From sequence record NC_019401.1: 64,000 nt of DNA; one strand, given 5' to 3'. Both the position numbers and the translations under genes were made by a program. The notes under the pieces were generated by a model that ran no database searches, was not told the DNA's origin, and worked only from the letters and a program-made list of their open reading frames with translations. Below, piece by piece: positions 14,504-15,211 of this stretch (the first letter of the stretch is position 1; every line of letters begins with the position of its first letter).

Positions 14504-15211
14504 ATGAACGATATAAGGGAATATATTCGTTGTAGAGATGATATTTTCTATTTTATTGAAACCTATCTTGGTTTAGCACTTAGAGGTTATCAAATAGACA
14601 TACTTTTTAAGTACTTAGGATTGAGTACTGGTAGGACAGAGAATATCATTAGCTTTAGAGGTTCAGGATTAACAACAATTAACTCATGTTATGCGTTATG
14701 GTTAGCATTATTTCATCCTGATACCAATATTTGCATTATTTCACCGAGAAGTAATGCAGCTAGTTTTAAACATAGCTCTTTGTACGAATTGTATAGCAAA
14801 CTTGAGAATAAATGGGATAGGAATAACACCAGATATGGCGTCTGTAAGCATTTTGACAACTCTATCACCTTTGAAAACAATTCTAAAATAGAATTCTCGT
14901 GGGATTTAGGAAATAATTTACGTGGAAAACATTTTGAAGTACTAATATATGATGATTTGTTTTCGAATCCACATGATGTAGAGTGTTTCAAAAACACTGC
15001 ACCTTGTGGTAAGAAATATATTATAACTAACACAGAATTGTTCGATGATACGTCAGAAATGGAAACTTATGGAACAGTTTCTACATATCCTTGGTACTGT
15101 AATCCAGACCTAACATTAAAATGGTATCTAACAAAGCTAAATAGTCTAGGAAAAACTGAATTTATGTTAAAATTCGGTTGCACTAGAGGAAATAGCAATG
15201 TCAAACTTTGA
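14504..15211 (+). CDS. Degenerate terminase-ATPase-domain paralogue (no nuclease domain)
   Basis: Aligns by eye to the adjacent TerL N-domain; Walker A RGSGLT (no Lys), Walker B LIYDD. Confidence 0.75.

Follow-up and report, generated by a model that had tools for sequence, protein, structure and literature searches.

Why does a jumbo phage keep, directly upstream of its large terminase gene and overlapping it, a second, shorter terminase-like gene? We addressed this question in a window of 64,000 nucleotides from record NC_019401.1 (window base 1 is record base 186,001), which comes from Cronobacter phage vB_CsaM_GAP32, a Rak2-like jumbo myovirus with a genome of 358,663 bp (100% identity to JN882285/NC_019401). 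The gene in question, GAP32_268 (14504 to 15211; unless another locus is named, positions are those of the window, plus strand), encodes 235 amino acids and is annotated in the record as "terminase DNA packaging enzyme large subunit." It is flanked upstream by GAP32_267, encoding a 166-residue hypothetical protein, and downstream by GAP32_269 (terL), encoding the large terminase subunit TerL. Our data identify GAP32_268 as a genuine protein-coding paralog of TerL that consists of the ATPase domain only and is catalytically degenerate; what it does in the infected cell can be answered more tentatively.

A Shine-Dalgarno sequence, AAGGAAG (14494 to 14500), precedes the GAP32_268 start codon at the right spacing, and the stop codon (15209 to 15211) falls within terL, whose start at 15198 gives an overlap of 14 nt. 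A longer reading of 243 residues from an ATG at 14480 was rejected; we prefer the start at 14504 because 14480 falls within a hairpin (14468 to 14489), whereas 14504 stands behind the Shine-Dalgarno sequence. A fusion of the paralog to TerL by ribosomal frameshifting within the overlap was likewise rejected, as XbC2, Kaldavass, and the truncated lineages described below have no overlap.

The similarity between GAP32_268 and the adjacent TerL (15198 to 16847) is far above chance, with 26% identity over 166 residues (BLASTP; E = 2e-12). This match covers the segments that the initial annotation had aligned when it described the gene as a TerL ATPase-domain paralog overlapping terL, a description that the PHROG assignment, the fold, and the 14-nt overlap equally support. 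The best PHROG is 5989, "terminase large subunit" (E = 5.2e-81), of which positions 108 to 340 of 347 correspond to residues 9 to 242 of the 243-residue reading. When the profile of the paralog family was compared with the PDB, it matched T4 gp17 (E = 1.4e-6), and the alignment pairs the P-loop, the R-G motif (V-R-G in gp17), Walker B, and motif C each with its counterpart. An AlphaFold model computed with 15 family sequences (pLDDT 77.6, pTM 0.81) has as its top Foldseek match the T4 gp17 ATPase domain (2o0h; TMq 0.68, E = 4.6e-10); other TerL ATPase domains rank behind it. The same model also matches 8dgc_E, the terminase chain of the Avs3-terminase complex (TMq 0.61), and its neighbors among the predicted models of the ESM Atlas are TerLs (TM 0.86). 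GAP32_268 has the fold of the T4 gp17-type TerL ATPase domain (Terminase_6N) in common with these proteins, and its motifs follow in the same order: N-terminal helices, Y-Q adenine motif, P-loop, R-G, Walker B, motif C, and C-terminal subdomain. It has no N-terminal extension, its first residue corresponding to about residue 35 of TerL, and its C terminus coincides with the end of the ATPase domain. There is no Terminase_6C match in Pfam, so the nuclease domain is absent, as had been proposed. All Pfam and PHROG matches are of the TerL type, with none of the small terminase subunit (TerS) type, and Pfam detects no DNA-binding domain.

We followed the catalytic residues through an ortholog set made up of 13 phage genomes, 13 usable IMG/VR loci, and metagenomic protein clusters, with residue counts taken over 24 family clusters. 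The neighboring TerL, 549 residues long, has intact catalytic motifs (Walker A, R-Q-M-G-K-T; Walker B, L-Y-L-D-E). In GAP32_268, the degenerate P-loop S-F-R-G-S-G-L-T (residues 50 to 57; 14651 to 14674) has Leu56 at the position of the classical Walker A lysine and Ser50 at that of the deviant lysine at the start of the loop. Neither position holds a lysine in any of the 24 clusters; the former is occupied by T, L, I, M, V, or S and the latter by V, G, S, N, or A, while the P-loop glycine (Gly55) is present in all 24. The Walker B-like strand V-L-I-Y-D-D (residues 146 to 151; 14939 to 14956) retains its acidic residue, Asp150 in GAP32_268 and Asp or Glu in 24/24 clusters. The next position, that of the catalytic glutamate, is Asp151 in GAP32_268, and across the clusters it is variously Asp (7), Asn (5), Ser (4), Ala (3), Met (2), Val, Gly, or Glu, the last in a single cluster. 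The earlier claims that Walker A lacks its lysine and that aspartate replaces the catalytic glutamate thus stand for GAP32_268. Unlike T4 gp17-type TerLs, GAP32_268 lacks a Walker A lysine of either kind, the catalytic glutamate, and the RNase H-like nuclease domain.

A missing classical lysine is by itself no proof of inactivity, because full-length TerLs with a deviant P-loop lysine exist. In IMG/VR, most matches to the pattern ARQMG[TMI] are full-length TerLs that lack the classical lysine and read K-A-R-Q-M-G-I-S-T, with the lysine opening the loop and an intact D-E. A similar deviant Walker A is known in lambda gpA. The TerLs in question (IMG/VR contigs L046 to L090) are 512 to 667 residues long with Ile at the classical lysine position, and one subgroup has S-E at Walker B, not D-E. 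In the Rak2-like paralogs neither lysine is present, and from their sequences we can soundly infer that these proteins, GAP32_268 included, cannot hydrolyze ATP.

Other elements of the ATPase site persist. Arg140-Gly141 (14921 to 14926) precedes the acidic pair of Walker B by 11 residues, the same spacing as that from Arg169 to Glu180 in TerL; the arginine is found in 16/24 clusters and the glycine in 20/24. In the P74-26 terminase, the trans-arginine finger R139 lies [quoted passage not shown] (PMC5727402), and by spacing and alignment Arg140 would occupy the corresponding position. An arginine at the position aligned with the cis P-loop arginine occurs in 18 of the 24 clusters, the other 6 apparently having it one residue later, and the Y-Q adenine motif is retained in the Mimasvirus/Eneladusvirus group.

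The locus is conserved as a unit. The order of exonuclease, 166-residue protein, paralog, terL, and structural protein is common to Mimasvirus (GAP32, CBB, XbC2, and Kaldavass), Eneladusvirus (BF, pEa_SNUABM_47, and Yen9-04), Asteriusvirus (121Q, phAPEC6, A4, JNE01, and BF17), Alcyoneusvirus RaK2, and XaC1. In all Rak2-like jumbo phages examined, the paralog adjoins terL on its upstream side, mostly overlapping the terL start, and no stop interrupts its frame in any of the 19 genome loci read or the 24 protein clusters, even though amino acid identity between clades is as low as 13 to 30%. The chance that a random frame of 235 codons with the same composition would contain no stop is about 1.5e-9. 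The ratio of nonsynonymous to synonymous substitution rates (dN/dS), estimated with bootstrapping from pairs with unsaturated dS, is 0.15 to 0.26 for the paralog (bootstrap upper bounds up to 0.39) and significantly below 1 in six comparisons; it is 0.03 to 0.06 for TerL and about 0.05 for GAP32_267. The paralog is under purifying selection, about four to five times more relaxed than that on TerL. According to the initial annotation, frameshifts or relaxed selection in relatives would mark a pseudogene. Selection is indeed relaxed relative to TerL, and truncated copies of 171 to 185 residues occur, but with dN/dS clearly below 1 and an uninterrupted frame in four genera and the XaC1 lineage, the paralog is no plain pseudogene. 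The Rak2-like family is narrow, with 15 clusters among 5.8 billion proteins in a word-indexed search. In a tree of 79 paralogs, TerL ATPase domains, and short relatives, which suffers from long-branch problems and leaves the deep branches without resolution, the paralog does not appear as the sister of its own TerL, and the duplication cannot be dated from it.

Part of the conservation within the gene concerns its neighbor. In Yersinia phage fHe-Yen9-04 and four IMG/VR contigs, the paralog ends just past motif C, and dN/dS among these truncated copies is 0.4 to 0.6. In their genomes, the DNA that elsewhere encodes the C-terminal L-N-S-L-G and C-T-R-G remains as noncoding sequence, G-CTAAATA-GTCTAGAAA followed by TAGAGGA, before the terL ATG. 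The first element, CTAAATA, lies in GAP32 within the codons of Leu212-Asn213 (15137 to 15143) and resembles a late promoter for terL; it is found about 55 to 60 nt upstream of the terL ATG in 13/14 lineages, including those in which it is noncoding. The second, AGAGGA (15185 to 15190), is the terL ribosome-binding site, situated within the Thr-Arg-Gly codons and conserved in the DNA alignment, truncated-paralog lineages included. Within the window, [A/C]TAAATA occurs 36 to 73 nt upstream of 9/12 virion-protein genes checked, among them those for the major head protein and the tail fiber, and likewise upstream of terL, GAP32_267, and a ribonucleotide reductase gene. It shows a strong bias toward the coding strand (ATAAATA, 14 versus 4; CTAAATA, 9 versus 2); copies are located, for example, at 358 to 364, 16847 to 16853, and 37070 to 37076. 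This pattern fits the late-promoter motif proposed in the CBB paper, which names ATAAATA as probably the late promoter in both CBB and GAP32.

No [A/C]TAAATA is present in the 100 nt upstream of GAP32_268. A hairpin with an 8-bp stem and a 6-nt loop, followed by a T-run (14468 to 14493), is instead located between GAP32_267 and GAP32_268, abutting the Shine-Dalgarno sequence of the latter. Hairpin and T-run occur at the same place in 14/14 lineages checked, with differing stem sequences, and have the appearance of a terminator or attenuator. With no motif of its own and a hairpin and T-run upstream, whereas terL has its own motif, the sequence suggests that the paralog depends on read-through out of the GAP32_267 unit and is produced at a level below that of TerL. 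The arrangement differs in XaC1 and in locus L037, which have CTAAATA upstream of the paralog and none before terL. In Asteriusvirus, the sole Shine-Dalgarno-like sequence lies upstream of the hairpin, and folding may bring it near the start codon. Both the paralog and TerL are unlisted in the CBB and phAPEC6 virion proteomes, in which the neighboring structural proteins are listed. The sequencing runs that match the sequence are metagenomic only, with no infection time course among them.

The reading of GAP32_268 that we favor, with a confidence a little short of even, is that of a noncatalytic accessory partner of TerL in genome packaging. It is favored by the fixed adjacency to terL, the retention of the fold and of interface-type residues, the purifying selection, and the lack of a recognizable TerS. 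In this scenario, the paralog, probably less abundant than TerL, would bind TerL via the same surfaces by which TerL ATPase domains contact one another or the portal; once bound, it might tune motor assembly or ATPase firing. It could thereby cover part of the job of a small terminase where no TerS is recognizable. Noncatalytic subunits that still give an arginine to a neighbor are familiar from the alpha subunit of F1-ATPase and the delta-prime subunit of the clamp loader. By analogy, GAP32_268 is paralogous to a catalytic subunit, has lost the residues for hydrolysis, and belongs to a family that often keeps an arginine at what would be an intersubunit position. Unlike in those systems, one-third of the family lacks the arginine, and a hetero-oligomer with TerL is hypothetical.

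Several observations weigh against such a partnership. The dN of the paralog is 3 to 15 times that of TerL and its dN/dS four to five times higher, and it evolves several-fold faster than T4 gp17-type TerLs. Between GAP32 and CBB, the paralogs are 57% identical and the TerLs 97%; between 121Q and A4, members of one genus, the values are 28% and 94%. Such fast change beside a near-frozen TerL is odd for an obligate partner. The missing arginine, at the trans-finger position, affects 8/24 clusters. The C-terminal third of the paralog is, judging from the truncated genes, dispensable in the Yen9-04-like lineage, and the near invariance of Leu212-Asn213 and of Gly229 is best explained by the promoter-like motif and ribosome-binding site of terL, not by protein function, because the same DNA is kept where it is noncoding. 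A complex prediction of TerL (55-row alignment) with the paralog (15 rows), ATP, and Mg gave an ipSAE of 0.01; we list it here, although this score counts neither for nor against binding.

Sinorhizobium phage phiM12, a member of the T4 superfamily, provides a further argument on this side. Its gene order is gp16 (TerS), gp17.2 (196 residues), and gp17, and gp17.2, described as a "truncated terminase," is like GAP32_268 a short TerL ATPase-like open reading frame abutting terL upstream. The coexistence of this truncated TerL with an annotated, normal gp16 means that such paralogs need not replace TerS. The phiM12 protein ends right past motif C, as the truncated Yen9-04-type copies do; unlike GAP32_268, it retains G-K-T and D-E and is therefore, by its motifs, potentially active, and it does not group with the Rak2-like paralogs in the tree. 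The gene is located at L021:3062-3652 on the minus strand, and the full-length TerL of phiM12 has A-K-T in its P-loop.

A fairly unlikely alternative, and the one that survives best beside the accessory partner, is that GAP32_268 is a weakly constrained relic of an old partial terL duplication, with little or no protein function, kept for the terL signals that it contains and for translational coupling. Its fast evolution, its dispensable C terminus, and the DNA-level cause of some of its conserved sites keep this explanation alive. The elevated dN and dN/dS would be expected of a relic, as would the truncated copies of 171 to 185 residues, in which dN/dS reaches 0.4 to 0.6 and the old C-terminal DNA survives only as the CTAAATA...AGAGGA signals; the ipSAE for the predicted TerL complex, itself neutral on binding, may be added here. 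Against a relic stand the six unsaturated comparisons with dN/dS significantly below 1 and a frame that has stayed open in 19 loci and 24 clusters despite near-complete sequence turnover. Moreover, the P-loop glycine is invariant and the fold confidently predicted, and constraint from the promoter and ribosome-binding site would cover only about the last 25 codons.

A second alternative, which we consider quite unlikely, assigns the paralog, alone or with GAP32_267, the role of a DNA-recognition subunit, a functional equivalent of TerS that passes phage DNA to TerL. T4 gp16, the small terminase of that phage, regulates the gp17 ATPase. Like genes for gp16 and other TerS proteins, GAP32_268 lies directly upstream of terL, and it stands in a phage group without a recognizable TerS. 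The initial annotation had noted no small terminase in the window, and the absence extends to the whole GAP32 genome, where neither PF11053 nor PF03592 has a match; as TerS families are hard to detect, this is weak evidence that TerS is absent. According to the RaK2 paper, gene 16 is one of the T4 core genes that are missing, and the XaC1/XbC2 paper described [quoted passage not shown] Distant, short, lysine-less relatives with N-terminal RHH domains would also fit a role in DNA recognition. Nonetheless, GAP32_268 has no sequence or fold relationship to TerS and neither an N-terminal extension nor a DNA-binding domain, RHH fusions account for just 2/104 short relatives, and phiM12 has both gp16 and a truncated TerL.

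GAP32_267 may contribute to such a subunit. This gene (13960 to 14460), encoding 166 residues annotated without a function, belongs to PHROG 15898 (E = 6.5e-92; function unknown). It is always directly upstream of the paralog, with 50 to 93% identity across genera, and by comparison with the phiM12 order of gp16, gp17.2, and gp17 it holds the place of gp16. Its product carries an invariant S-K-K-R-F-x-P-G-W-W motif, the S-K-K-R part of which is basic. Pfam, NCBIfam, the PDB, and the Atlas contain no named or related family for it, and its AF2 model, which is poor (pLDDT 62), is beta-rich, unlike the helical TerS folds.

We likewise consider it quite unlikely that GAP32_268 is an antidefense decoy, a dead TerL look-alike that soaks up or blocks sensors of the terminase fold (Avs types 1 to 3) and so shields the real TerL. 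A decoy would have the TerL ATPase fold, as the paralog does, including its Foldseek match to 8dgc_E, and very fast divergence between close phages would be expected in an arms race. However, pairwise dN/dS gives no sign of positive selection on the paralog, which also lacks the nuclease domain and the active-site residues; in the Avs3 structure, these are reportedly part of what Avs3 reads. A mimic of the fold would be as likely to trigger a sensor as to block it. Furthermore, the gene lacks an early promoter of its own, and its locus belongs to a late or middle block of packaging and replication genes. PADLOC gives no match for GAP32_268, a result that is uninformative for a phage counterdefense protein. 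Finally, a weapon against competitors, that is, a dominant-negative motor fragment poisoning the terminase rings of coinfecting relatives, might account for the fast split into types of about 30% identity within one genus and for interface-type residues kept without catalysis, but it would have to spare the phage's own, nearly identical TerL and is highly improbable.

GAP32_268 has company beyond the Rak2-like phages. An exhaustive profile search yielded 1,320 matches at E <= 1e-3, with a ranking biased by the lysine-less query profile. Past the Rak2-like family, 104 of the next 133 matches are short (median, 261 residues; all beginning with Met) and end with the ATPase domain. Among these 104, 89 lack the classical lysine, 71 lack both lysines, and 32 keep D-E, which is kept in 23/24 full-length matches. 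PHROG 5989 is the best match for all 10 short relatives tested; many of its members carry an N-terminal extension of 50 to 100 residues that is absent from GAP32_268. The two RHH domains, both above the Pfam cutoffs, are fused to a lysine-less TerL ATPase-like domain in P0187 (313 residues) and P0195 (320 residues), adjoining poly(A) polymerase, HAD, and NUDIX genes. P0187 lies two genes upstream of a 618-residue TerL, and another short relative lies directly downstream of a 520-residue TerL, while others have no TerL-like open reading frame within 4 to 6 kb; we therefore propose no general rule of adjacency to terL for the short lysine-less relatives, whose contexts are mixed. The Atlas also contains clusters of Terminase_6N-only viral proteins of 257 to 273 residues. 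In metagenomes, TerL-like proteins reduced to an ATPase domain with degenerate motifs are common; their usual label is "terminase large subunit."

Extending the accessory-partner reading to these proteins leads to a bolder proposal, which as a whole we hold to be unlikely. Rak2-like phages, and perhaps many carriers of PHROG 5989, would possess a heteromeric terminase in which a TerL-derived pseudo-ATPase replaces TerS, docks where ATPase domains meet each other, and gates firing by providing or holding back an arginine finger, with RHH domains adding DNA recognition in some lineages.

Several further observations concern terL. Its product in GAP32 matches Terminase_6N (E = 8e-16) and, below threshold, Terminase_6C (20.7 bits versus a cutoff of 22.6 bits in Pfam), with PHROG 36964 as the best PHROG (E = 6e-259). 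The TerLs of RaK2 (L009:4653-7322) and JNE01 (L012:3638-6298) contain an intein of about 340 residues with a LAGLIDADG endonuclease between the Walker A Lys and Thr, which explains why the PHROG 36964 profile has 890 positions; the CBB paper already reported a TerL intein for RaK2 and K64-1. In some Asteriusvirus genomes, those of E. coli phage A4 (L005:3896-5534) and phage BF17 (L013:3644-5285), terL is split into two frames, with T-A-R-Q-M followed by G-K-T-T-V in the +1 frame. The split is caused by one extra C between the Walker A Met and Gly codons (ATG C GGA AAA, compared with ATG GGT AAA in 121Q and GAP32) and is common to these two independent isolates, which differ at synonymous sites. 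Clusters of C-terminal TerL sequences of 445 residues also exist (P0056 and P0059, with 20 and 4 members). Lying two codons before the site at which the intein is inserted, the split is a candidate for programmed +1 frameshifting.

That such a gene exists was already known. A "truncated large terminase" has been discussed in papers of 2017, 2020, and 2024 (PMC5259590, PMC7760394, and PMC11273794), the first of which named the CBB_274 orthologs Rak2-like "truncated terminase," and a tandem truncated terminase without a detectable small terminase is part of published descriptions (Buttimer et al. and Kim et al. among the authors). Our literature search returned descriptive mentions only; in the searchable papers, the loss of catalytic residues, selection, and function are not discussed. 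New here is the catalytic-residue and evolutionary analysis, comprising the absence of both possible catalytic lysines throughout the family, estimates of selection, the lineage with truncated copies, the terL expression signals embedded in the paralog, and the link to a broad class of lysine-less, ATPase-only TerL-like proteins.

TerS is missing or unrecognized in many jumbo phages, and for regulating their motors and choosing their DNA a conserved, catalytically dead copy of TerL next to the terL gene is an obvious candidate. If the gene should prove dispensable, it would represent an open reading frame preserved in part by the expression signals of its neighbor. If instead GAP32_268 and its relatives are regulatory subunits, they would reveal a novel architecture for viral packaging motors, and a widespread misannotation would be corrected.

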